Shown here one piece after another: positions 44,909-55,849 of a stretch of 64,000 nucleotides of DNA. Position numbers and translations under genes: made by a program. The DNA lies in the IMG/VR virus record IMGVR_UViG_3300031857_000002, positions 1-64,000 of that record. One strand, given 5' to 3'. The notes beneath the pieces were generated by a model that did not search any database, was not told the origin of the DNA, and saw only the letters and a list, made by a program, of their open reading frames with translations. The first letter of the stretch is position 1; each line of letters begins with the position of its first letter.

Positions 44909-46687
44909 TTATACTGGAGGGGGTGCGGCACCACCAGGCATTCCGCCTGGAGCAGGAGGCACAGCGCCAGGCATTCCGCCCATACCGCCATCTGGTGTCA
45001 TCTGACCAATGTCTTCGCCTGTTTGAATGTCTGTTTCTAGTGCGCCAGGAGTAATCCCTACTGATCGTAGATCTTGTCCTGTGGTAGGTTTCATCTCTGG
45101 TGAGTCACGTTCTTCACGCCACATCTCTTCGTTCTTCTTGATTTCGTCTTCAGTCAGGCCCAAGAAGCGTTCTAGCATAAAGCGTTTTGACATGTATGGC
45201 AGTTGTTCCATGCTGGTAAATGCTTGAATACGTGTGTTATCCAGCTCACTTTGACGGTAACTTGCAAAGTTTTGAGGTGCATTAAACTTGATGTTAAACA
45301 GGCTAGAGTCTATGTTAAACCCGCGCCACTTCATGAACATCTTGAATTCGTCGTCTAGTTTTTGGCAGATCAACGCCTGTAAACGTTCGCAATACTGATT
45401 GAATCTGTACTCTTGTATGAGTGCTGTGCCTACTTTTCCGTCGTCAAATGTCTTGCCTGAGTCGTCTGGACCTGTGGGCAAATAGCTTGACGGCACACGC
45501 AGACCACGGGCCATTTTGTTGTTAAAGTACTTTAAATCGTCAATTTCGCCTAGGTTCTGTCCGCCTGGCAATGTGTCCACGCTGGATCCACGACCGTCTG
45601 CTGTTTGTGGAAAGAAGTAATCTTCGTTGATGCTAAGTGGGTTATAACTGGCATCCATCATGTTCTGTCCACCACCAGTAGTGGTAGGAATTCTACGTTG
45701 ATGCATTTCGTTTTTGATACGTTCCACAAACTGCATGGCCAAGTGGCTGGGCATGTTGCCCACGTCAATCTTGAAAATACGTCGTTCAGGAGCACGACTC
45801 ACACGATAGATAAGAATTGAGTCTTCCAGCAGTTCTTTCTGCTTGAACACTTTGTAGATGTTTTCCAAGATGCTTTTGCCAAACGGCCAAAACACATCAA
45901 GTCCTTCGTTCAGGCTCATGTGCACCACGTGTTTGGCATCCAAGCAAACTTCGTTCATGGCCTGCATGAAACGACTGTTGCCCACACCGCCACCTGTGCC
46001 GCCATTGGGCATGGTGTAGTTGGCAGCACCCGAGATTGTGCCTGTTACAGGATTGGTCATGTAGTCTGTAGTAGTCTTGGCCGCCACAGTCATGTTTTGA
46101 AAGTTGGGGTTGATGTCACGAATCACATACTGTTCAGGACGCTTGCCTTCTGATTCGTTCACAATCACACGAGCTACCTTGCTCATGTCCACCCACATCA
46201 TTTCAAATGTTTCTGGATCACGCACAAAGATCTGATCGCCATACTTGATGGTATTACGGAACAGTTTGAAGATACGCTGATCCAATTTGTTTAATTTTGT
46301 CCACTGTTGCAACTGTTTACGGATGATGTCAATCTCGTGATCAGTAGGAGTGTCTGAATACTTTACTTCAAACGGTGTGCCGTTTTGTTCGTTTAGCTGT
46401 GTGGAGAACTCAGCAATAATGTCCAAACATGCATTGATCTCTGAGTCCATGTCCATGTTTTCGTACTGATTATAACGTTCAATACGGTTGGGATGACCTG
46501 AGTAAACTTCTGGCAGTCGGCTGGCATAGTTGCGATAAACCATGTCTGCAGGATAGTTATCGGTGCCGTTGTTCTTGCCGTAGCCTGGAAAGCCGTCAGC
46601 ATAGCGTCCTGAAATTGGACCTAACTGACCAGTGGTGTCGGCCACTTTGAAATATTTTTTCCAGCCGGGGGATTGTTTTTCTGCCAT
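44909..46687 (-). CDS. portal protein (gp20-like)
   Basis: LLEDS.LIYR..RAPERRIF.IDVGNMP...A, EDYFFP....GRGS.V.TLPGG.NL....D..YF..K....L.VP. Confidence 0.96.
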   Translation of the reverse strand: MAEKQSPGWKKYFKVADTTGQLGPISGRYADGFPGYGKNNGTDNYPADMVYRNYASRLPEVYSGHPNRIERYNQYENMDMDSEINACLDIIAEFSTQLNEQNGTPFEVKYSDTPTDHEIDIIRKQLQQWTKLNKLDQRIFKLFRNTIKYGDQIFVRDPETFEMMWVDMSKVARVIVNESEGKRPEQYVIRDINPNFQNMTVAAKTTTDYMTNPVTGTISGAANYTMPNGGTGGGVGNSRFMQAMNEVCLDAKHVVHMSLNEGLDVFWPFGKSILENIYKVFKQKELLEDSILIYRVSRAPERRIFKIDVGNMPSHLAMQFVERIKNEMHQRRIPTTTGGGQNMMDASYNPLSINEDYFFPQTADGRGSSVDTLPGGQNLGEIDDLKYFNNKMARGLRVPSSYLPTGPDDSGKTFDDGKVGTALIQEYRFNQYCERLQALICQKLDDEFKMFMKWRGFNIDSSLFNIKFNAPQNFASYRQSELDNTRIQAFTSMEQLPYMSKRFMLERFLGLTEDEIKKNEEMWREERDSPEMKPTTGQDLRSVGITPGALETDIQTGEDIGQMTPDGGMGGMPGAVPPAPGGMPGGAAPPPV

Positions 46688-46706: not shown

Positions 46707-49697
46707 TTACATGGAAGTTTGCAGTATTCTTTCCTGCACACTAACCGAGTTCTTTTGCTCTCTGATCATGTCTGACATTGCATTTATAAGCTGTTCTGTT
46801 TGCTCTCGCATGACGTTGACCAGTTCAGTCATTGCTCTGTTGTCTGATGATGCTACCGCAGTAACTTCACGCTCGGGTGCATCTTTCATGCTTTGCATCA
46901 TACCTTCAAACATCTTTTTCACGTCTGGCATTTCTAAATTGATAGGTATTGCCCCGTTGTCCAAAGGTATCATTGCCTCTGGGCCTTTTTCAGCCACCAT
47001 GGCAATTTGTGGAGTTGATGCAAGTCCGCCATCTGCATAGCCAGGAATCTGTGCATGAATATGTCCTGCTGTGGCTTTTGCACTGGGATTGTTGTACTCA
47101 TCAATGGCTACACTGGCACCCATGCTTTTGAGCCAGTTTGTGATTTCTTTGCCTTCTTCAACTGAAGGCTGTTTTGACAGTGCAAAGTCCATGGCACGAC
47201 CTGTGGTATGACTACTGCTAGGAGATTTTTCCTGATGGAACTTGTCGTTAAATCCAGAGAAATAAGCAAAATTAGGCATGTTGGCCTGTACTTGCTGTGC
47301 TAGTTCAATAATCTTGGGATCAATTTTACTGCCTTCGGCCTGCACATCGCCTGTCTTGAGCTTGAGCCCTATCTTGGTAAGATCGTTCTGCGATGCTATA
47401 CCTCCAGCAACACCTTGCCCTCCGCCCATGGCAGGCATGTTCCCTGCGGCAGGCATTTTCATCCCTGCACCTCCTGTCGCTCCACCAGTAGCAGATGATC
47501 CAGCGGCTGCTGTTTTTTGTTGCAAGATATCAATCTGTGACTTGAGATCCGGAGTTTCTAGATCCATCAACTGAGTTTTGAGATCCACATAACTCTTGTA
47601 TGCTATGCTGTATTTTTCAGCACGTTTTGTGTCTGCATCTGTAAGTCGTTCTAGTTTTACTGAATCTTTGGCTATTTCATCAAAGGCATCATCCATTTCT
47701 CTAGACCCTGTGGTCATGGACTTGGATACTACTGACAGTGTTGACATCAATGACTTTACTGTGTCTGCAGCCGACGGACCTGTTAAGGATGGTTGTTTTC
47801 CAAGCACTGACTCTGATGGGCTTGTTAAAGATTTTTGTTTACCGAGCACTGATTGTGCTGTGCCTGTTTTGGTCCCGTTGTCTAATTCAGACATTGGTAT
47901 CACAGCTTCTTCTCCATGAAGCATGGCCAGATACCCCGAAGTTGGCCCTTTAAGAATACCTCCATCAGCGGCTTTTGGTAATCCTGACATCTCGCCAAGA
48001 CCCTTTCCAAGTTCTTTACCTGCAGTGCCTCCTGCCCAGACACCAAGTGCTGATCCAATCAATCCACCTACCACTGCACCAACTGCATTGCCAATAATTG
48101 GAACTGCTGTGCCTAATGCGGCACCTACGGCTGCTCCTTTAAGGCCACCAGCAACTCCAAGGCCGATTGCACCAGCTCCTTCTCCAAGATTTTCTGCTGT
48201 GCTAGCAGTGACTTTCTTACCACCTGGAGTCAGTTCATTTAACATGTTGGCAGCGTTTTTAGTAGCAGTTGCTAGTGTTATCATAGCATCTTGTGCTGGA
48301 CCAATACCTTTCTCGATAAATGCTTCCATGGCCTTGTTGGCATCAATCTGAGCTTTAATTAACTGTGCTTGCTTGGCCAGCAACGGATCAACTCCGCCTT
48401 CAAGTATTTTTTGTTGATCTGCTTTGATCTTGGCCATGTTGACCGTGATATCACCTTGTGCCAACTGTGCTAATTTTAGTTGCTCGTTGATAGGACCAAA
48501 ACTTTCATTGTATGCACCAAACTGTCCCAGTACCACACCTACGCTGTCTGCAGTCTTGCCCATAGCTGTACCAGTTATGGTCACCGCATCAGTATAACTC
48601 ATTTGACCCGCAATAACTTTTTGCGTGGTCTCTAGCATGGCTCCGTTACTGGCCAAGTTGGCTGCTTGTGCATCAGCATTGCTTAGGTTACCTGTAACTG
48701 ATGCTTGGAAAGCGGCTGCCATCTTGGGTCCAGCCGCTTCGTAAATTGCGTTCATTTTCATCAGTTCTTCGGCTGCTTTTTTACCTTCGGGGCCTTGCAA
48801 TTGCAGTTCACGAATCTTGGCAGCAAACTGTTCACCTTGTAACGCACGCTCACGTTGATCTTCCATTTCCTTGCGTGTCTGACCAGTGAGCTTGGTCAAT
48901 GCATCTTGTTCAACTAGATACTTTTTAGCACCGTCAGCAAGTTCAGCATTGGTTTTACCTTGAGCATTGCCCAGGCGTGTCTGTATCTTTAGATAACCTA
49001 ACATGCCGTCAGACACGTCAGCCATGCTCATGCCCATTTTTAAGAAGTCTTCTCTACTGCCTTCAAGAGCTTGACCCATGTCGCCAAGACGTTGTCGTCC
49101 TTCATACACTGATCCAGAAAACAATGCTAGATCTTTGCTGTTGGCTGCAATTTGCCCCACAAACACATCTAGTTCACCTACACTGAGTCCCAGCTGATCA
49201 CTGGCTTTTTTGACTCCTGTCATGCCATCGCTAGCGGCTCCTCCAGCCTTGCTCAATCCTGAATATGTTTTGTATAACTGGTCTGCCATGGTGTTGGCAG
49301 CTTTGGTATAGGCTGCAAACGCACCTACTGCGGCTGTGACTCCTGCAATCAACAAGCCAACTACTTTGCCAAATGGATTCATTAGAGCTAGTGCCACTGC
49401 GGCTGCTGTTGCTGCCTGGGCCATGCTGTCAATGCTTTCGTTGAATGCGGTTGCACCTTTTTTGCCTTCCAACATGGCCTTGCCCGATGCCATTGCTGCC
49501 GCAGCCACATAACTGGCTGCCTCCCCAAATTTTTCTGCACCTTTGGTAGCATTGTTAATGCCGTATTTGGCTTTGACTTGAGCGTCGTGCATGTCTTCCG
49601 AAGTTAGTTTGGTTAGTTTGCCAAACTGAGCCATATCGTAATTTACTTGTTCTAGTATTCGAGCAAGTTCTTCCATCTGTGCATTTGTGTCGGCCAT
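46707..49697 (-). CDS. tape-measure-like / baseplate hub protein with C-terminal M15-like peptidase motif
   Basis: 996 aa, Ala/Gly-rich helical with two hydrophobic glycine-zipper segments; S.HTTGRAMDF...GHIHA motif; divergent from gp26. Confidence 0.65.
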   Translation of the reverse strand: MADTNAQMEELARILEQVNYDMAQFGKLTKLTSEDMHDAQVKAKYGINNATKGAEKFGEAASYVAAAAMASGKAMLEGKKGATAFNESIDSMAQAATAAAVALALMNPFGKVVGLLIAGVTAAVGAFAAYTKAANTMADQLYKTYSGLSKAGGAASDGMTGVKKASDQLGLSVGELDVFVGQIAANSKDLALFSGSVYEGRQRLGDMGQALEGSREDFLKMGMSMADVSDGMLGYLKIQTRLGNAQGKTNAELADGAKKYLVEQDALTKLTGQTRKEMEDQRERALQGEQFAAKIRELQLQGPEGKKAAEELMKMNAIYEAAGPKMAAAFQASVTGNLSNADAQAANLASNGAMLETTQKVIAGQMSYTDAVTITGTAMGKTADSVGVVLGQFGAYNESFGPINEQLKLAQLAQGDITVNMAKIKADQQKILEGGVDPLLAKQAQLIKAQIDANKAMEAFIEKGIGPAQDAMITLATATKNAANMLNELTPGGKKVTASTAENLGEGAGAIGLGVAGGLKGAAVGAALGTAVPIIGNAVGAVVGGLIGSALGVWAGGTAGKELGKGLGEMSGLPKAADGGILKGPTSGYLAMLHGEEAVIPMSELDNGTKTGTAQSVLGKQKSLTSPSESVLGKQPSLTGPSAADTVKSLMSTLSVVSKSMTTGSREMDDAFDEIAKDSVKLERLTDADTKRAEKYSIAYKSYVDLKTQLMDLETPDLKSQIDILQQKTAAAGSSATGGATGGAGMKMPAAGNMPAMGGGQGVAGGIASQNDLTKIGLKLKTGDVQAEGSKIDPKIIELAQQVQANMPNFAYFSGFNDKFHQEKSPSSSHTTGRAMDFALSKQPSVEEGKEITNWLKSMGASVAIDEYNNPSAKATAGHIHAQIPGYADGGLASTPQIAMVAEKGPEAMIPLDNGAIPINLEMPDVKKMFEGMMQSMKDAPEREVTAVASSDNRAMTELVNVMREQTEQLINAMSDMIREQKNSVSVQERILQTSM

Positions 49698-49710: not shown

Positions 49711-49730
49711 TAAGTAGAAGTATATTTATA
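49711..49730. promoter_or_regulatory. overlapping divergent late promoters
   Basis: TAAGTA (+, 49711-49716) and TATAAATA (-, 49723-49730) in a 41-nt intergenic gap. Confidence 0.65.
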
Positions 49731-49738
49731 GGTGCAAA

Positions 49739-50581
49739 ATGACCCAAACTGCTAACCCGCTGAGACATTTTTTTAGACAACCAGCAATCTATCTTCGCTT
49801 GCCGTCAGATGGCAACTTCTGGCCCGAAGGCGATATTGCAATGACACAAAATCGCGAACTGCCGGTGTTGCCCATGACTGCCATAGACGAAATTACCTAT
49901 CGCACACCTGATGCCCTGTTCAACGGACAAGCTGTGATTTCAGTGATTCAAAGCTGTATTCCCAACATTAAAAATGCATGGTCAGCGCCCGGGCTTGACG
50001 TCAATGCTATTTTGATTGCTATCCGTATTGCCAGTTATGGGCACAACATGGGCATCAGTACTACTTGTCCAAAATGTCAAACCGAAGAACAGTACGAAAT
50101 TGATCTTCGCAACATGTTGGATCAGATTGCGTCACCTGACTACACCCAGACTATCACACACGGTGATTTGGAAATTGCGTTTCAGCCAGTGTCGTACAAG
50201 AATCAAAACGACACCAATCAAATGCAGTTTGAAGAACAGCGCATGATTCGTGCTATTCCTGGATCAGACTTGCCTGACGAAGAAAAGATACAAAAGCTCA
50301 ATGCTGCCTTGAAGCGTATTACTGAGCTCACAGTAGATGCCATGCAGTTCAGCATTGCCAGCATTAGAACTCCACAAGCCCTGGTCACTGAATCTCAGTT
50401 TATTCAAGAGTTTTTAAACAACTGCGATCGTAACTTGTTCAGCAAAATACGTGATCGTGTGATTGAGCTCAGAGTTGCTAGTGACTTGAAACCTATCAAG
50501 ATCACATGTACCAATTGTAGCAATGAATACGAACAATCAATGAATCTGGATCAAGCAAGTTTTTTCGAAACCGCCTCCTGA
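49739..50581 (+). CDS. baseplate hub assembly protein (gp26-like)
   Basis: NPL..FFRQP.IY..LPS, PMTA.DE, D...IL.AIR.AS.G, CPKC and CTNC Zn knuckles, ends ..SFF. Confidence 0.8.
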   Translation: MTQTANPLRHFFRQPAIYLRLPSDGNFWPEGDIAMTQNRELPVLPMTAIDEITYRTPDALFNGQAVISVIQSCIPNIKNAWSAPGLDVNAILIAIRIASYGHNMGISTTCPKCQTEEQYEIDLRNMLDQIASPDYTQTITHGDLEIAFQPVSYKNQNDTNQMQFEEQRMIRAIPGSDLPDEEKIQKLNAALKRITELTVDAMQFSIASIRTPQALVTESQFIQEFLNNCDRNLFSKIRDRVIELRVASDLKPIKITCTNCSNEYEQSMNLDQASFFETAS

Positions 50582-50607: not shown

Positions 50608-50796
50608 ATGATTGACAGAATGGACCAGGAGGCCAATGACTTAAAACGTCAAGGGTTAAAAATGTCTTGGTACATGCGTGGCGGTGCCAGTTACAATGAT
50701 GTGATGAACATGAGTCATCAAGAACGGCAAATGGTCAGTGAACTGATCAAAGACAACTTAGACACAACTAAATCTAGCAAATTACCATTCTTCTAA
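50608..50796 (+). CDS. small gp51-like ORF; possibly the -1 frameshift extension of the gp26-like gene
   Basis: WYMRGG..Y....M...ER motif; its frame is open back to the slippery heptamer at 50560. Confidence 0.6.
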   Translation: MIDRMDQEANDLKRQGLKMSWYMRGGASYNDVMNMSHQERQMVSELIKDNLDTTKSSKLPFF

Positions 50797-51299
50797 TGTA
50801 CATTGAACAAGTCAAACAAGATATTGAAAATTGGATTGTGAACTTTGTAGAAGTTCCACATCCTGCCTTGGGTGGATTTCCGCCTTGTCCTTATGCCCGC
50901 AGTTCAAGACTCAAAAACAGTTACGATGTGTTCATTGGATCTGATCCGTATTTTGATCTCAAGAATCGAGCACGACATGGCATGGGCAACAAAGAAGTTG
51001 TGATATATGCATACGATCCTGTGGAATGGCCACATGACTTGTTTGCTGCCAGTTTAGATCATGCCAATCAAGACTTTTTGTTGACAGCCAACTTACTAAC
51101 CCTGGAAGATCATCCTGCTGACCAAGAAATTGTAAACGGCATCTGCATGAATCAAGGCACATATGCCCTGGCTCTTGTGCAGAGTCTCAGTGATCTCAAC
51201 ATCAAAGCACGGCTCATGGCCAGCAAAGGATTTTATGATTCTTGGCCAGAAGATTATCTAACTGCACTGTTTCAGCACAGAGAGGATCCTCGCAAATGA
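50796..51299 (+). CDS. hypothetical protein (DUF1415-like: W...FV......PCPYA...EDHP)
   Basis: 167 aa; TAATG coupling to the upstream stop. Confidence 0.55.
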   Translation: MYIEQVKQDIENWIVNFVEVPHPALGGFPPCPYARSSRLKNSYDVFIGSDPYFDLKNRARHGMGNKEVVIYAYDPVEWPHDLFAASLDHANQDFLLTANLLTLEDHPADQEIVNGICMNQGTYALALVQSLSDLNIKARLMASKGFYDSWPEDYLTALFQHREDPRK

Positions 51300-51727
51300 C
51301 ATATCAGTTTGCTAGAATTAATCTAGAAAAAACTACCTACAAGCCTGCAGTTGATTGGTTTTACATCACCAAACCCAACATTGCAGAACTACAAGACATA
51401 TACAGAACCTATTGCACATACAAACACTTTGCCAGTGTAATGCCGCTGTTTGACAGTCAGTTCACAGAGCCAGGCACAGATTTGATTGGTTATAGAGATC
51501 AAGGGCAGTTAGTAGCGTTTTCCATGATGAAACGTTACGACGACAAAAATTTATTAGCCGCACAATTTGCCTGGAACTATCGTAAACCTCGACTACGTTT
51601 GGGAATATCAAGTTTACAGACAGAATGTGCAATCTACAGAGAGCGAGGATTTGAGTACTTGTACTTGGATCAAGCTCACTTGTACAAACAGGACCTTGAA
51701 GGTTTTGAAATACTAGGACCACTATAA
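51296..51727 (+). CDS. GNAT-fold protein resembling the aminoacyl-tRNA-protein transferase (Ate/Bpt) C-terminal domain
   Basis: YR..G.LVAFS...LG..SL..E....R..GF.YLYL....YK....FE.L matches the Ate C-domain pattern. Confidence 0.55.
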   Translation: MTYQFARINLEKTTYKPAVDWFYITKPNIAELQDIYRTYCTYKHFASVMPLFDSQFTEPGTDLIGYRDQGQLVAFSMMKRYDDKNLLAAQFAWNYRKPRLRLGISSLQTECAIYRERGFEYLYLDQAHLYKQDLEGFEILGPL

Positions 51728-52062
51728 TGGACATTTACACAATTTGGGCAGACAAAGAAGGCGACATCTCAGACTTGGACTGGGTCAACGGCATGAAGAG
51801 CTTTTTTGATCATTTGAAATCAGAAGGCCGGATGGAAGACTATCGCATCACTAGATGCAAGATGGGATTCAGAAGTATCGCAGACATGCCCGAATGGATG
51901 ATACTCATGGAGTTCAAGGACATGGCTCAAATGGACTCGGCATTTAAACGTGTTGCTCCTCTTGAAGGAGAACTAGAAGCCAAACACAAGTCGTTCAATC
52001 AGTTTGTATCAGGCACAATACAACATGCATTGTTTCGTGATTGGCCTGACCAAAATCTATGA
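51727..52062 (+). CDS. DUF6614-like dimeric alpha/beta-barrel protein
   Basis: Y..W.D...D.......FF.HL..EG....YR.TR.K.GF......E....EF....Q.D.AF..V....G..E..H. Confidence 0.55.
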   Translation: MDIYTIWADKEGDISDLDWVNGMKSFFDHLKSEGRMEDYRITRCKMGFRSIADMPEWMILMEFKDMAQMDSAFKRVAPLEGELEAKHKSFNQFVSGTIQHALFRDWPDQNL

Positions 52063-53099
52063 ACAACGTATTTTGTGTCACTAGTTATAATTCTGTTGGC
52101 TGTACATTCATTGACTGGAGTGTTTATTTTCTAAGTAATCAATCCCATCACTACAATGTCAAGTCAAACAGATGGTTACCAGTATCACAGAATCCATTGA
52201 CTGAACTTAATGCACACGGTCATGATAAAAATCATCCGCACGGGCATGACACAACCAAAAGTTTTATAGAACATATCGAAACATTAACCTCTGACAGATT
52301 GCATTCGATATATCCGTGGGCATTAATGCTAGGCACCGCAGCTGAATATTTAAATTTACCACCAGAATCTATTACCAATACTGACGCGGTTAATCGTATA
52401 ACTCAATTTAAAAAAGATGATTACAATGAAATTTTGAATCTCTGCAGTGCAAAACAGATTAAAACTGTGTTTGTACAAAGTGATTCAAGATCAATTTTGT
52501 ATTTTCAAAAAAGAAGAGTACTTACACATTTGCTGTTAGACTATAAAACACCAGCCACTTCTGAGCAACAACTCAACGACGAATTTCAAACAGTGTTTTT
52601 TAACAAAAGCCTATTAGACTGGCAGGATAACGGGTTAACAGAAATCTGGGATGTGAGAGAAAGACTAGCATTAGACACTCGTCCATTTGATCAAGACTTG
52701 ATAAATTTTGTTCCAGACTTGCAACATCCTTATCTGTGGATCAACAGCTTCGATCTATGGACACGCACACCCGATGTACTTGAAAAAATAATGAAATTTC
52801 TAGAACTACCAATAGACCATGAAAAATTTATTCAATGGTTACCTATCTGTAGCAAGTGGCAGAAAATACAACTAGACATACTGGAGTTTTGTTTTAACCA
52901 AGAACACATAGTAAAAGCCATCATCAACAACTGGCATTACGAAATAGATCTAACATTTGATCAAGAAGTGATTATACAACACTGTTTGATTTACCAGCAC
53001 GGACTAAATCTCAAAACGTGGCAGTTGGAAAAATTTCCCAAGAATACTAAAGATTTACATAAACTGTTAGAACCCAACATACATCCAATTGTTCTCTAA
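52059..53099 (+). CDS. hypothetical protein (possible degenerate sulfotransferase/P-loop fold)
   Basis: 346 aa, AT-rich; N-terminal S..SVGCTF..WS; late 'DL......L.KI..FL.L' segment. Confidence 0.55.
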   Translation: MNNVFCVTSYNSVGCTFIDWSVYFLSNQSHHYNVKSNRWLPVSQNPLTELNAHGHDKNHPHGHDTTKSFIEHIETLTSDRLHSIYPWALMLGTAAEYLNLPPESITNTDAVNRITQFKKDDYNEILNLCSAKQIKTVFVQSDSRSILYFQKRRVLTHLLLDYKTPATSEQQLNDEFQTVFFNKSLLDWQDNGLTEIWDVRERLALDTRPFDQDLINFVPDLQHPYLWINSFDLWTRTPDVLEKIMKFLELPIDHEKFIQWLPICSKWQKIQLDILEFCFNQEHIVKAIINNWHYEIDLTFDQEVIIQHCLIYQHGLNLKTWQLEKFPKNTKDLHKLLEPNIHPIVL

Positions 53100-53509
53100 C
53101 ACATGCAAGACTTGCCCTGCAAGTCTGTTAATTTCGCTATCGCTCATTAACCAATTATTTTCTTTAAAAGCTATTATCTAGATTACGTGGTCATAGTTCA
53201 CCGTATGCACGGTGAACAAAAAACGCCATTATCTGAGTATAGCAGTCATCTATCATAATGAGATTGTAGTTTCCTACACGGAGGCGGTTGACCGGTACCC
53301 CCTACTCAAGCTTCACGTATCAACGGAACCCTAGTAACCCGATATAGATCCAAGTTCTATAAGCTGGGGTTGTATCTTTTTCACATAGCCCCGACCATTT
53401 GTTGCCTTAAGTTAGCAATTGCCTTTGACGCCCAAGTCCGAATTGGGTATCTCACCAATCCTCAATGGGGTTGAGCCACGTCGCCCAACACAGTGTCTTA
53501 ATCGTTGCC
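53100..53509 (-). ncRNA. candidate ~410-nt structured non-coding element (RNA or origin) downstream of the GIY-YIG gene
   Basis: Largest intergenic gap in the window; at least 8 stem-loops, including a GAAA tetraloop and a UUCG-containing loop on the - strand. Confidence 0.5.
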
Positions 53510-53938
53510 TTACAGTTTGTCTATTATATGAGAGCCATGCACACGCACTTGTATGTGGCCATTGTAATAATCTCGTGATTCCAACACTCTTCTTGAAAAT
53601 TGCTCTCTTGCTTCGATGTAACTACATTCCGATTTGGAGTTGCAATAAAAAAGTATTTCTCTGGTGAAGTTTTCGGTGCCTAGTTTGATTACGTCTGAAG
53701 TTAATTCTGGGCTTGACCCATAGTACTCTCTCCAGTCTGAGTCGACCTTTGATCGTATCTTTTTCTTCTTCTTGATGCCGTTCTTTTGCTTAACTGTCTT
53801 GTATGTTGTCTTGCTAAATTTTGCTAATTTTTTGCCTATGTACTTGCGTCCAGTGAGATTATTTGTGATCAAGTAAACAAATCCAACACATTCTTCGGGC
53901 AACGTCTCAATTGGGGTATCTTGATATAGCCATGTCAT
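53510..53938 (-). CDS. short GIY-YIG family nuclease-like protein
   Basis: GFVYLITN...GRKYIGKK...Y.GSS...F.REIL...E...YYN; Lys-rich insert. Confidence 0.85.
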   Translation of the reverse strand: MTWLYQDTPIETLPEECVGFVYLITNNLTGRKYIGKKLAKFSKTTYKTVKQKNGIKKKKKIRSKVDSDWREYYGSSPELTSDVIKLGTENFTREILFYCNSKSECSYIEAREQFSRRVLESRDYYNGHIQVRVHGSHIIDKL

Positions 53939-53978
53939 GTGTTGTATGCGATTTATCCTTGCTGTATAGTTATCTCCG

Positions 53979-54989
53979 TTACCAAGAAGTTGCGTATTTT
54001 TTGTCTACTACTGAAGTTTTGCATTTGCTTTGACATTCTTGCCACTTGAATGTTTGAAATTCAGTGGACCAGAATGAATCTGCAAGCACAGTTGTTAAAG
54101 TTTTTGTGTGTAAATCAAAGTTGTTTGCTAGTTGTTGCCAGTCTGAATTGTGATTGTATCGGTTGGCTACCCAACAGCAGGGAAATAACCTGCCTTGAGC
54201 ATCAATATACAACCCTTTGTTGCCTATCTCGCACAACGGAGTAATACCGTTGCGACTTTTAGTTTGATTGAATAGTTGTATGTTTGTTTGAGAAACAGTT
54301 TCATCTGCTCCCCTAGTTGTAAATGCTGTGGTGTCTCGTTCAAACCGATGACTACTGCTGATATATTTTACACTGGGTTGCAGTGGATCGTTTACACCAT
54401 AAGAGGGATACACGCTGCCAAATTTTGTACTCTTGGTCAACTGGAATTGGTCTACTCCTAGATCTTTAGCAAACTGCTTCATGCGTTCTATATGACTTTC
54501 ATTGAACTTGAATGCAATTGCAGCCCATACAAGTTGACATTGACTTGCTGATCGCAGTGCTTGAATTCCTGCAACAATGCTAATGTAGTCGCTGTTAACT
54601 CTGTACAAGTTGTTGCTGGTGTTGTCATATCCGTCAATACTGAAATGCACACTGTCAGAAGAGTCTAGTAGTTTGCCTAACTCCAACCACCATGCTGATT
54701 TCTTATGCGATCCATTGGTAACAATCACAATCTCCACAGGCTTGATACTTTTGATATATTCAATTACAGATATTAAGTCATGCGCATAGATAGGGTCTCC
54801 GTCATCACCACAGAACGTGATCTTCTCTACATTAGTCAACACAAACTCGGGTGTAAAATTACGTTTGAAGAACGCTAGATCAAGTTCAGTGTTGATCAAA
54901 CTGTCAGGCACTTCTTGGCGAGCGCAACGAGGACAGCGCAAGGTACACTTACTGGAAATTTCAATGTGAAAGTGCCAAGAGGCTAGCAT
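53979..54989 (-). CDS. radical SAM/SPASM-twitch protein
   Basis: CTLRCPRC, CG..GDP, TNG, FSIDG; C-terminal C...G.L.PCCW...C...C. Confidence 0.9.
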   Translation of the reverse strand: MLASWHFHIEISSKCTLRCPRCARQEVPDSLINTELDLAFFKRNFTPEFVLTNVEKITFCGDDGDPIYAHDLISVIEYIKSIKPVEIVIVTNGSHKKSAWWLELGKLLDSSDSVHFSIDGYDNTSNNLYRVNSDYISIVAGIQALRSASQCQLVWAAIAFKFNESHIERMKQFAKDLGVDQFQLTKSTKFGSVYPSYGVNDPLQPSVKYISSSHRFERDTTAFTTRGADETVSQTNIQLFNQTKSRNGITPLCEIGNKGLYIDAQGRLFPCCWVANRYNHNSDWQQLANNFDLHTKTLTTVLADSFWSTEFQTFKWQECQSKCKTSVVDKKYATSW

Positions 54990-55849
54990 AGTTGTGTTTC
55001 CCTCCGCCATTGATTTGAAAAACTTGTGACAGCATCTTGTGTGCCGCACGTATTCATGCATATTTGATTGGGCTGTGGACTGGTCCACGAAGTTTCAATA
55101 GATTTAAAATCTGTAACAAAGTCTTTTTGTCTAGCACCTAGCCAGCAACAAGGACTTAGGTTGCCACGAGCATCGATGTATGCGCTTTGTTCATTAAGTG
55201 CATGACAGTTGACTCGGGTTCCTTGCACGTTGGTCGAGAGCCAGCCAATTGGCGCTTCGAGTCTATCTGTAAAACCACGTTTGGATACTTTAGCACGGAA
55301 CCATCGGAACCCCATGTCTCGGGCCAGTTGTTCACATTCGTCCACTTGATGTTGGTTGTGTTTGTATACCAGCATGTCCCAGTGTGCAGATCCGCCTGCT
55401 TCTATGAATGAACGTGCGTTGGCCATTAACTTGGACCAATCTACATTCTTACGATACACATGATTAGTGCTTTCTAATCCGTCAATACTAAACACCACAA
55501 AGTCTTGTGGTTGATTTAGAATTTTAGCAAGTCCGTACCACCAGAACGGATTCTGAATAGCACCATTGGTGTTTAATCCTAATACAATACCTGGATTAAC
55601 AGATCTAAAATACTGATATAGGTCAACAGTGTACTTGCCAGCAACTGGATCGCCGTAGTTGCCGCACATGAACATCTTGGTCAAGTTAGCAATAGCTTGA
55701 TCATCAAAATGCTGTTGTACCTGTCTAACTGACAGGTGGTGTTGTTGATGCTTGTGAAATGCTTTGTCAGTTTCGCGAGAACACAACGGACATGCGGCCT
55801 GGCACACATCCGTTGGTTCTAAGTGTAAGACTTTTATATTACGCAACAT
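54983..55849 (-). CDS. radical SAM/SPASM-twitch protein (paralog of neighbour)
   Basis: CQAACPLC, CGNYGDP, NTNG, FSIDGL, PCCW, C..TC. Confidence 0.9.
   Translation of the reverse strand: MLRNIKVLHLEPTDVCQAACPLCSRETDKAFHKHQQHHLSVRQVQQHFDDQAIANLTKMFMCGNYGDPVAGKYTVDLYQYFRSVNPGIVLGLNTNGAIQNPFWWYGLAKILNQPQDFVVFSIDGLESTNHVYRKNVDWSKLMANARSFIEAGGSAHWDMLVYKHNQHQVDECEQLARDMGFRWFRAKVSKRGFTDRLEAPIGWLSTNVQGTRVNCHALNEQSAYIDARGNLSPCCWLGARQKDFVTDFKSIETSWTSPQPNQICMNTCGTQDAVTSFSNQWRRETQLC

Follow-up and report, generated by a model that had tools for sequence, protein, structure and literature searches.

The locus lies in a window of 64,000 nucleotides (positions 1 to 64,000 of the IMG/VR record IMGVR_UViG_3300031857_000002), which belongs to a freshwater jumbo phage. 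The genes and features are summarized in Table 1. As shown in Table 1, three genes encoding A167, B143 and C111 are joined on the plus strand by short overlaps of stop and start codons, and the overlap chain extends further in both directions, starting at a small 62-aa ORF and running on into a fourth gene of the cassette, D346. The coupled chain therefore has five genes, not the three of the original prediction.

Table 1. Features of the locus, with positions in the 64,000-nucleotide window.
Positions	Strand	Feature	Assignment	Junction with the next gene
49723-49730	minus	TATAAATA	Serves the divergent 996-aa gene
49739-50581	+	Context gene	T4-type baseplate hub/assembly protein (gp26/gp51-like), not part of the module
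50608-50796	+	62-aa ORF	Probably belongs to the baseplate block	TAATG; stop TAA (50794-50796) overlaps the A167 ATG (50796)
50796-51299	+	A167	DUF1415/DUF6875 ("cytochrome P422")-like; probable Cys-ligated heme oxygenase	ATGA; stop TGA (51297-51299) overlaps the B143 ATG (51296)
51296-51727	+	B143	Minimal single-domain GNAT of the ATE_C (arginyl/leucyl-tRNA-protein transferase) family	TAATG; stop TAA (51725-51727) overlaps the C111 ATG (51727)
51727-52062	+	C111	DUF6614 protein	ATGA; stop TGA (52060-52062) overlaps the D346 ATG (52059)
52059-53099	+	D346	346 aa, no recognisable family
53108-53126	+	Hairpin	Terminator-like; possible end of the operon

The observation of the original prediction, a translationally coupled cassette carrying an aminoacyl-tRNA-protein transferase-like gene, was confirmed. 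However, the cassette is not located directly behind the baseplate gene, as had been claimed, because the conserved 62-aa ORF lies between that gene and A167. With regard to the late transcript that the genes had been proposed to share, the only TATAAATA nearby is on the opposite strand. The terminator-like hairpin after D346 was found in a consensus scan and has an 8-bp stem with 4 GC pairs; its T tract is weak, and the number of such sites in the region is no higher than in shuffled sequences.

The context gene matches Pfam T4_baseplate (1.9e-14) and phrog_150 "baseplate hub" (5e-18). It precedes the module only in the phage lineage of the window and is absent beside the module in the related loci L092, L111 and L148 (related loci are numbered with the prefix L). 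The 62-aa ORF gave no family hit. It always travels with the gp51-like gene, and insertions of about 640 nt separate it from the A gene in L023-25 and L083. The start of B143 was placed at ATG 51296 rather than at TTG 51242, which follows from the 143-144-aa length of its homologues.

Family and predicted fold of the encoded proteins

The label of an Ate/Bpt-like GNAT given to B143 in the original prediction was supported at the family level. In the Pfam scan at E<=1, ATE_C (PF04377) is the only family matched by B143, at 6.9e-5 and 23.9 bits, which is just under the cut-off of 25 bits. Relatives score 24.6-33.8 bits, long-form relatives pass the cut-off, and 38 of 47 family representatives hit ATE_C, the best at 1e-12. 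None of the 47 members hits an acetyltransferase family at E<=0.01, where the only other GNAT hits are Acetyltransf_6 (FemAB-like, 2 members) and LPG_synthase_C (1 member). Single-sequence and shallow-profile searches of solved structures with B143 returned nothing, whereas the deep family profile hits only ATE1 among PDB sequences, at 1.5e-8, and aligns to residues ~234-313 of K. lactis and yeast ATE1 through the hallmark L-G...Y-x-Y-L-G...Y-K-x-x-F-x-G motif.

The AF2 model of B143 (pLDDT 88.8) has the GNAT fold. Structural comparison gave Z-scores of 12-14.5 to the second GNAT lobe of FemX, MprF, VipF and NMT, and ATE1 is among the Foldseek hits, although the first Foldseek hit is a tandem acetyl-CoA-type GNAT. 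Fold search alone cannot tell an acyl-CoA donor from an aminoacyl-tRNA donor, and only the sequence profiles are ATE-specific. B143 differs from ATE1 and bacterial Bpt in that it starts at the first GNAT strand and has neither the ATE_N (PF04376) region with its Cys cluster nor a C-terminal extension; in ATE1, the N- and C-termini together form the acceptor-binding domain, while the GNAT domain binds tRNA (PMC10115844). No ATE_N hit was obtained even for the long forms, whose N- and C-extensions are Cys-less. B143 also differs in being encoded by phages beside a P422-like gene.

The label "DUF1415-like" for A167 is supported by predicted fold. The AF2 model (pLDDT 95.1) has the element order a1-a2-b1-a3-b2-a4-b3-b4-a5, an alpha/beta sandwich with a four-strand sheet, and gives a TM of 0.83 to a DUF1415/DUF6875 (PF07209/PF21780) cluster of the Atlas. 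A Foldseek search of solved structures returned no hit under 1e-3, but an exhaustive VIA-align search gave AglA (9ub3_A), a heme-thiolate guanidine N-hydroxylase, at Z 7.0 with 149 residues aligned, the next best being Z 4.2. A Z of 7 is a middling score, even if AglA stands alone. The Pfam DUF6875 match covers only residues 8-46, the heme-binding region, and at 16.2 bits it is below the cut-off of 24.5; 27 of 31 homologues show the same weak N-terminal match, the best at 1.1e-4.

A167 keeps a near-invariant C31-P32 within W/F-x-P-C-P-Y-A-R, where C-P-[FY]-A-[KR] is universal in the family, and an invariant D105-H106-P107. DUF6875 has been shown to be a thiolate-heme family with an RxGxVCP ligand motif before helix 2 (bioRxiv 10.64898/2025.12.11.692455), and AglA uses Cys44 as its heme ligand (PMC12866846). 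In A167, the upstream R-x-G-x-V is replaced by G-G-x-x-P. An hhalign comparison places C31 on the conserved Cys of YqcI/YcgG proteins, but the match is weak (E 0.023, 35 columns), and PF08892 (YqcI_YcgG) has no match in the whole phage genome at E<=1, so that the resemblance to these proteins is in fold and Cys position only. A167 is also shorter than the P422 proteins (167 aa against 180-300 aa). Characterized P422 enzymes act on L-tryptophan, and none is known from a virus or beside an ATE-like gene.

C111 is a clear DUF6614 (PF20319) protein, with a Pfam match at 5.6e-23 and 81.6 bits (cut-off 25) over residues 1-109 of 111, and all 30 top Atlas feature hits are DUF6614 clusters. It is the most conserved member of the module, with 87-100% identity across the clade and invariant R40, R43, K45, E56, H87, N91, H100, R104 and D105. 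Its sequence pattern alone gives the impression of a ferredoxin-like beta-alpha-beta-beta-alpha-beta protein. D346 gave no hit in Pfam, PHROG, NCBIfam or PDB sequences. Profile searches of solved structures with A167, C111 and D346 returned nothing meaningful. A predicted complex of B143 and C111, computed to see whether C111 could replace the missing acceptor domain in trans, scored 0.02 against a mark of 0.32, which is not evidence either way; the idea rests only on the occurrence of C with short-form B alone.

Linkage of the genes in related loci

The A, B and C genes co-occur in hundreds of phage contigs in many gene orders. In essentially all loci without an insertion, A and B overlap by 4 nt, and the B>C junction is at −1 to +2 nt. 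The A gene lies upstream of short-form B in 78 of 83 and 71 of 80 loci, whereas with long-form B the order is reversed (B>A, 15 loci) or convergent (5 loci). C is found only with short-form B, never with long-form B. Homologues of D346 follow C on the same strand in 26 loci and lie on the opposite strand in 10, which makes D a frequent but movable companion.

In 36 related loci, for example L006, a gene of ~380 aa (E) sits inside the module. The E profile hits L-arginine:glycine amidinotransferase (AGAT) at 6e-24, SxtG at 1e-18 and StrB1 at 5e-17, and also HsvA, with the catalytic His (G-G-H-S-D) and Cys (G-G-x-H-C-x-T-x-D) aligned to AGAT; E carries a lineage-specific insert of ~60 residues. 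The orders A>E>B>C, A>B>E>C and A>B>C>E were observed, as well as B with A<E<C< on the other strand. The cassette in the window has no amidinotransferase, and the three paralogues in the genome lie elsewhere. In other phages the module sits in unrelated contexts with PRPP synthase/RpiB, sugar-nucleotide genes or radical SAM genes.

The pairing of A and B is not obligatory. Of 82 long-form B loci (80 from the IMG/VR scan plus L087 and L088), 62 show no A within 4.5 kb of B, and A-like genes also occur alone in cultured phages and in a Bdellovibrionia chromosome, where the neighbors (an Mrp/NUBPL-type ATPase, a class II aminoacyl-tRNA synthetase and a LysM transglycosylase) are uninformative. 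Gene gp66 of the cultured Puniceispirillum phage HMO-2011 is a homologue of A167. DUF6614 was found neither in 301 genomes of the phylum of this Bdellovibrionia MAG nor in 14 control genomes, so no bacterial context was obtained for C111. Searches of GenBank phages, where near relatives may be missing, by tblastn and blastn with the region, B143, C111 and a long-form B gave no match. The family is nevertheless abundant: the short form alone has 2,598 clusters at 90% identity, and more than 590 IMG/VR stretches were found for the short form and more than 530 for the long form.

Candidate function of the module

The interpretation of the original prediction, a phage tRNA-dependent tagging or modification module, was partly supported. 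The kinship of B143 with the Ate/Bpt C-terminal GNAT domain, the translational coupling and the wide co-occurrence in several gene orders hold; neither of the outcomes that had been named beforehand as refuting, assignment of B143 to an ordinary acetyl-CoA GNAT and absence of co-occurrence elsewhere, was obtained. A tRNA-dependent modification module remains the best generic reading, whereas the specific idea of tagging acidic protein N-termini is not supported.

We consider it about as likely as not (probability about 0.5) that A167 and B143 are the core of a conserved, mobile phage biosynthetic or tailoring module, with which C111, often D346 and in many relatives an amidinotransferase travel. 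In this view, B143 would be the tRNA-binding catalytic domain of an ATE/Bpt-type transferase and would most likely move an aminoacyl group, with arginyl as the leading guess and leucyl possible, from charged tRNA onto an amine acceptor. A167 would be a P422/YqcI-type cysteine-ligated heme oxygenase that most likely oxidizes (N- or C-hydroxylates) the amino-acid side chain of the substrate or product, and the amidinotransferase, where present, would bring in or move a guanidino group taken from arginine. The likely acceptor would therefore be a small molecule or short peptide rather than a protein N-degron. The anatomy, the family and fold kinships and the linkage conserved in several gene orders were established directly by the analysis, whereas the transfer reaction and its tRNA donor, heme binding, the amino acid used, the acceptor, the order of steps and a shared transcript are inferred, in the absence of biochemical evidence for any step.

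This logic mirrors argolaphos biosynthesis in Streptomyces monomycini, where AMPn-Arg, the substrate of AglA, is made by AglC with ArgRS and tRNA (PMC12866846). Arg-tRNA-dependent amide formation by AglC is followed by heme-thiolate N-hydroxylation by AglA, a non-P450 enzyme of the four-strand "sandwich" fold, and the cluster lists a YqcI/YcgG protein (AlpD) together with GNAT-type genes annotated PF13480 and COG3146 (PMC8976061). However, the sequence relation is very remote, B143 belongs to the ATE_C branch, and there are no phosphonate genes here. The phage encodes 25 tRNAs, three of them tRNA-Arg. On the other hand, no 2Fe-2S ferredoxin gene (Pfam Fer2), a usual redox partner, was found in the genome, and because P422 enzymes act on tryptophan and bacterial Bpt uses leucine, arginine is a guess.

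A more far-reaching possibility, which is doubtful on present evidence, is that phages of lakes and oceans carry a compact, mobile, aminoacyl-tRNA-dependent natural-product-like pathway of a minimal ATE-type transferase, a P422/YqcI-type heme-thiolate oxygenase, an amidinotransferase and DUF6614. During infection it would make an oxidized (for example N-hydroxy) guanidino or arginyl conjugate acting as an antimetabolite, signal or defense-countering molecule. As far as is known, it would be the first such pathway in viruses, and it would show that the ATE GNAT domain can work without its protein-substrate domain.

Enzymes that divert aminoacyl-tRNA away from the ribosome (ATE1/Bpt, L/F-transferase, Fem, MprF and natural-product ligases) are few, and in the papers and GenBank phage records that could be searched, neither this module nor any phage-encoded member of the ATE/Bpt or tRNA-dependent ligase kinds was found described. 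The enzyme kinds themselves are known. If the module makes a modified arginine or guanidino compound, an unrecognized class of viral auxiliary metabolism would come into view, a minimal ATE domain would be available for mechanistic work, and the newly defined P422 heme family would extend into viruses. The linkage also gives three families of unknown function a testable context.

Among the alternatives, all of which are considered unlikely, a counter-defense module survives slightly better than the others. In this reading, C111, perhaps with A and B, would neutralize a host immune system, for example by modifying or depleting a host factor or signal. A phage anti-Druantia type I protein (Druad1, ORF71 of DruSM1) was "predicted" to belong to DUF6614 (bioRxiv 10.1101/2024.04.14.589459), C111 is under the strongest purifying selection of the set, and the module moves between accessory regions. 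However, Druad1 has 44 aa against 111 aa here, the method of its prediction is not given, its authors found no homologues at BLAST <0.1, and the reading is not backed by any PADLOC or defense-related hit. It does not exclude the biosynthetic reading and may describe the purpose of the product.

N-degron-type tagging, in which B143 would add Arg or Leu from aminoacyl-tRNA to N-terminal Asp/Glu of phage or host proteins and A, C and D would be accessory or unrelated, is not excluded but is less likely than the main reading. The sequence kinship is specifically with ATE1/Bpt, whose known members act on protein N-termini, and the module lies next to virion genes in this lineage. However, B143 lacks the parts that hold the protein acceptor in ATE1, the conserved partners are relatives of enzymes that act on free amino acids or small conjugates, and in other phages the module sits in metabolic islands rather than structural blocks.

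It is similarly improbable that B143 is an ordinary acyl-CoA-dependent GNAT and that the cassette has nothing to do with tRNA. The highest structural Z-scores include VipF with acetyl-CoA, N-myristoyltransferase and MshD (Z 12.8-14.5), but these are tied with MprF, FemX and Sba18/Sbb17, and the family searches described above returned no acetyltransferase family. In addition, the loop before helix 3 reads P-R-L-R-L-G-I-S-S, which follows the ATE-type L-G..S pattern and not the Q/R-x-x-G-x-G/A pyrophosphate loop of CoA-dependent GNATs.

Finally, mere joint inheritance of neighboring hypothetical genes is largely refuted, because although most of the 163 short-form loci belong to one broad clade of freshwater T4-superfamily jumbo phages with conserved synteny, the linkage survives at 33% (A) and 48% (B) identity and is kept across at least eight different gene orders and orientations, with two B architectures, in unrelated flanking contexts.

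Gene arrangement and genome context

The window is the first 64 kb of a virus record that is 320,175 bp long and is rated 92% complete by CheckV. The coordinates of the features described here are collected in the table below.

Features of the cassette, its surroundings and related sites elsewhere in the same genome
Feature	Coordinates	Strand	Description
Portal protein	44909-46687		Portal_T4 7e-105
996-aa protein	46707-49697	-	Ala/Gly-rich, no Pfam hit
Late-promoter word	49723-49730	-	T4-type, TATAAATA
T4-type baseplate gene	49739-50581	+	Pfam T4_baseplate 1.9e-14
small62	50608-50796	+	62-aa ORF
A167	50796-51299	+	
B143	51296-51727	+	
C111	51727-52062	+	
D346	52059-53099	+	
Hairpin	53108-53126		Follows D346
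Endonuclease and two radical-SAM-like genes	53510-55849	-	SegE-type GIY-YIG (8.6e-33); radical-SAM-like genes overlapping, with C-C-W motifs
Amidinotransferase paralogue, outside the window	113082-114101	-	Full-length
tRNA array and tmRNA, outside the window	136698-148365	-	25 tRNA genes on the minus strand; permuted tmRNA
Amidinotransferase paralogue, outside the window	203666-204724	-	Full-length
Amidinotransferase paralogue, outside the window	280953-281978	-	Full-length

Four successive start/stop overlaps, TAATG, ATGA, TAATG and ATGA, join small62 through D346. The observation on which this work was based, namely three genes joined by TAATG/ATGA overlaps, held, as both its coordinates and its junctions are right. 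However, the coupled chain consists of five genes rather than three, and a small ORF separates the cassette from the baseplate gene, which it had been said to follow directly. B143 starts at the ATG at 51296 and not at the upstream TTG, because its homologues are 143-144 aa long and begin at the same residues. In four relatives (loci L023-L025 and L083), an insertion of about 640 nt lies between the small62 and A167 homologues and separates the baseplate block from the module. The only T4-type late-promoter word nearby is on the opposite strand, 26 nt upstream of the start of the 996-aa protein, and the original prediction of a shared late transcript therefore remains a supposition. The 996-aa protein lies next to the portal gene and is possibly a tail-length or hub protein.

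The portal protein is about 50% identical to those of the jumbo phages Atu_ph07, PA5oct and Phosso. Relatives come from lake metagenomes, on contigs of up to 347 kb. The tRNA array of the genome includes three tRNA-Arg genes (TCG, ACG and TCT) and three tRNA-Met genes, and the tmRNA carries the tag ANDEQFALAA.

Sequence and predicted-fold relationships of the encoded proteins

For B143, Pfam gives only ATE_C, at 23.9 bits against a cut-off of 25. An exhaustive search of 1.8 billion representatives found 128 relatives in two architectures, a short form of 139-153 aa and a long form of 225-268 aa, the latter with an N-terminal extension of about 80 aa and a C-terminal extension of about 50 aa. 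The long forms pass the ATE_C cut-off. Of 47 representatives of the family, 38 hit ATE_C (best 1e-12), and the only other GNAT families hit are Acetyltransf_6 (FemAB-like) and LPG_synthase_C. A profile of the family finds only ATE1 among all PDB sequences (1.5e-8), where the alignment runs through the L-G...Y-x-Y-L-G...Y-K motif. One representative of 232 aa (P0149) carries an unrelated N-terminus of about 95 residues ahead of its B-like part, and its C-terminus departs from the conserved ending of the family. This N-terminus resembles, by eye only, the start of a DNA polymerase III delta subunit (HolA), and the sequence is probably a chimeric gene call.

The AF2 model of B143 (pLDDT 88.8) is a single GNAT domain, which superposes on the second lobe of tandem-GNAT enzymes. 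The Z-scores are tied at 12-14.5 for acyl-CoA users (VipF, NMT and MshD) and aminoacyl-tRNA users (MprF, FemX and Sba18/Sbb17), so that the fold does not identify the donor and only the sequence does. In ATE1, the GNAT domain is the main binding site of the tRNA acceptor arm, and the N- and C-termini together build the substrate-binding domain (PMC10115844). By this comparison, B143 keeps the tRNA/catalytic part and lacks the protein-acceptor part.

The AF2 model of A167 is confident (pLDDT 95.1). Although a Foldseek search with it found nothing, the exhaustive VIA search singled out AglA (9ub3_A) at Z 7.0 with 149 residues aligned, where the next best score was Z 4.2. The Atlas search gave a TM of 0.83 to clusters annotated DUF1415/DUF6875. 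Pfam DUF6875 matches only the first 40 residues or so, weakly, in 27 of 31 homologues.

Two recent papers give these families a function. DUF6875 is "cytochrome P422", a thiolate-ligated b-heme enzyme with a four-strand sandwich fold, whose ligand Cys sits in an RxGxVCP motif and which hydroxylates tryptophan or forms C-S bonds (bioRxiv 10.64898/2025.12.11.692455). AglA, of the YqcI/YcgG family, has the same kind of fold, uses Cys44 as the heme ligand and N-hydroxylates the guanidine of AMPn-Arg (PMC12866846). A167 has a near-invariant Cys31-Pro32 in the loop before helix 2, and C-P-[FY]-A-[KR] is universal in every A-like protein that we inspected. An hhalign comparison with YqcI/YcgG proteins taken from bacterial genomes aligns Cys31 with their conserved Cys, though only weakly (E 0.023), and PF08892 itself does not hit the phage. 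We conclude that A167 is probably a distant, minimal member of this heme-thiolate superfamily, with heme binding inferred.

C111 is a full-length DUF6614 protein (5.6e-23) and the most conserved gene of the set (87-100% identity), with a constellation of invariant Arg, Lys, His and Asp residues. D346 has no recognisable family.

Linkage of the genes across phage lineages

In what follows, A, B and C denote A167, B143, C111 and their homologues. In 83 loci of the clade of the window, A is adjacent upstream of B in 78 and C is adjacent downstream in 68; in 80 further short-form loci, the counts are 71 and 59, respectively. The A-B pair persists at 33% (A) and 48% (B) identity. With long-form B, the order is reversed and again overlapping (B>A, 15 loci) or convergent (5 loci), and C never accompanies long-form B.

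A gene of about 380 aa (E) lies inside the module in 36 loci. Its profile matches L-arginine:glycine amidinotransferase (6e-24), SxtG, HsvA and StrB1, with the catalytic His and Cys aligned. E occurs as A>B>E>C, A>E>B>C, A>B>C>E and A>B>E, and in two contigs A, E and C lie on the strand opposite to B. The cassette of the window lacks E; however, the same genome has three paralogues, about 30% identical to the in-module gene of relatives, and several other ORFs that match only the middle insert of that gene.

The flanking genes differ completely between lineages. They are baseplate and portal genes here, whereas elsewhere they are PRPP synthase and RpiB, sugar-nucleotide enzymes and PTPS, or radical SAM/SPASM genes. 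In one related locus (L148), three radical SAM/SPASM genes flank a shuffled copy of the module, and the endonuclease and the two radical-SAM-like genes just downstream of the present cassette may belong to an extended cluster. This pattern is what a functional gene cluster looks like, and it is not what inherited synteny looks like.

Two contigs of 148 kb and 183 kb from a Haliscomenobacter sp. MAG (NZ_JBBAKG010000003.1 and NZ_JBBAKG010000001.1; loci L249 and L250) carry the complete A-B-C cassette at 62-72% (A) identity, which is either a hint at the host or the result of phage contigs mis-binned into the MAG. In Bdellovibrionia MAGs (loci L253 and L254; 709-kb contig), an A-like gene with 28% identity and a G-G-W-A-P-C-P-Y-A-R motif sits alone in a bacterial chromosome, beside an Mrp/NUBPL iron-sulfur ATPase and a class II aminoacyl-tRNA synthetase.

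Proposed pathway and alternative readings

The closest precedent is argolaphos biosynthesis, in which AglC builds AMPn-Arg from Arg-tRNA (made with ArgRS and tRNA in vitro) and AglA then hydroxylates the guanidine (PMC12866846). That cluster lists a YqcI/YcgG protein together with GNAT genes (PMC8976061). By analogy, we propose that B143 would transfer an aminoacyl group from charged tRNA to an amine, that A167 would oxidise the amino-acid side chain, and that the amidinotransferase, where present, would handle a guanidino group taken from arginine. Three of the enzyme types of the module point to arginine or guanidino chemistry, with the two caveats that P422 enzymes use tryptophan and that bacterial Bpt uses leucine. 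While the gene arrangement, the sequence and predicted-fold relationships and the linkage are results of the analysis, heme binding, all the catalytic steps, the acceptor and the product are inferred. We give this reading a probability of about 0.5.

Among the alternatives, a counter-defence role is unlikely but survives best. It rests on a 44-aa anti-Druantia protein that was reported as "predicted DUF6614"; the link is thin, and this reading is compatible with a biosynthetic module. The original interpretation, a tRNA-dependent tagging or modification module with acidic protein N-termini among its possible substrates, is partly supported. Its N-degron form is doubtful and only slightly less likely than counter-defence, because it is weakened by the missing acceptor domain and by the nature of the partner genes. 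About equally improbable is an acyl-CoA-dependent GNAT, which the fold allows but which no sequence evidence supports. Mere synteny is very unlikely, as the shuffled arrangements speak against it.

The enzyme kinds are known, and what is new, as far as the searches went, is the form in which they occur here and their setting. A comparative review of jumbo phages mentions no ATE, aminoacyl-tRNA transferase, amidinotransferase or YqcI gene, and literature searches for the DUF names gave only the papers cited here. Cultured phages carry A-like genes alone, annotated as hypothetical. These are gp66 of Puniceispirillum phage HMO-2011 and gene 100 of Synechococcus phage S-SCSM2R, both marine phages without B, C or E beside the gene and usable as experimental handles for the heme question, together with genes of CRP-345 and CRP-810.
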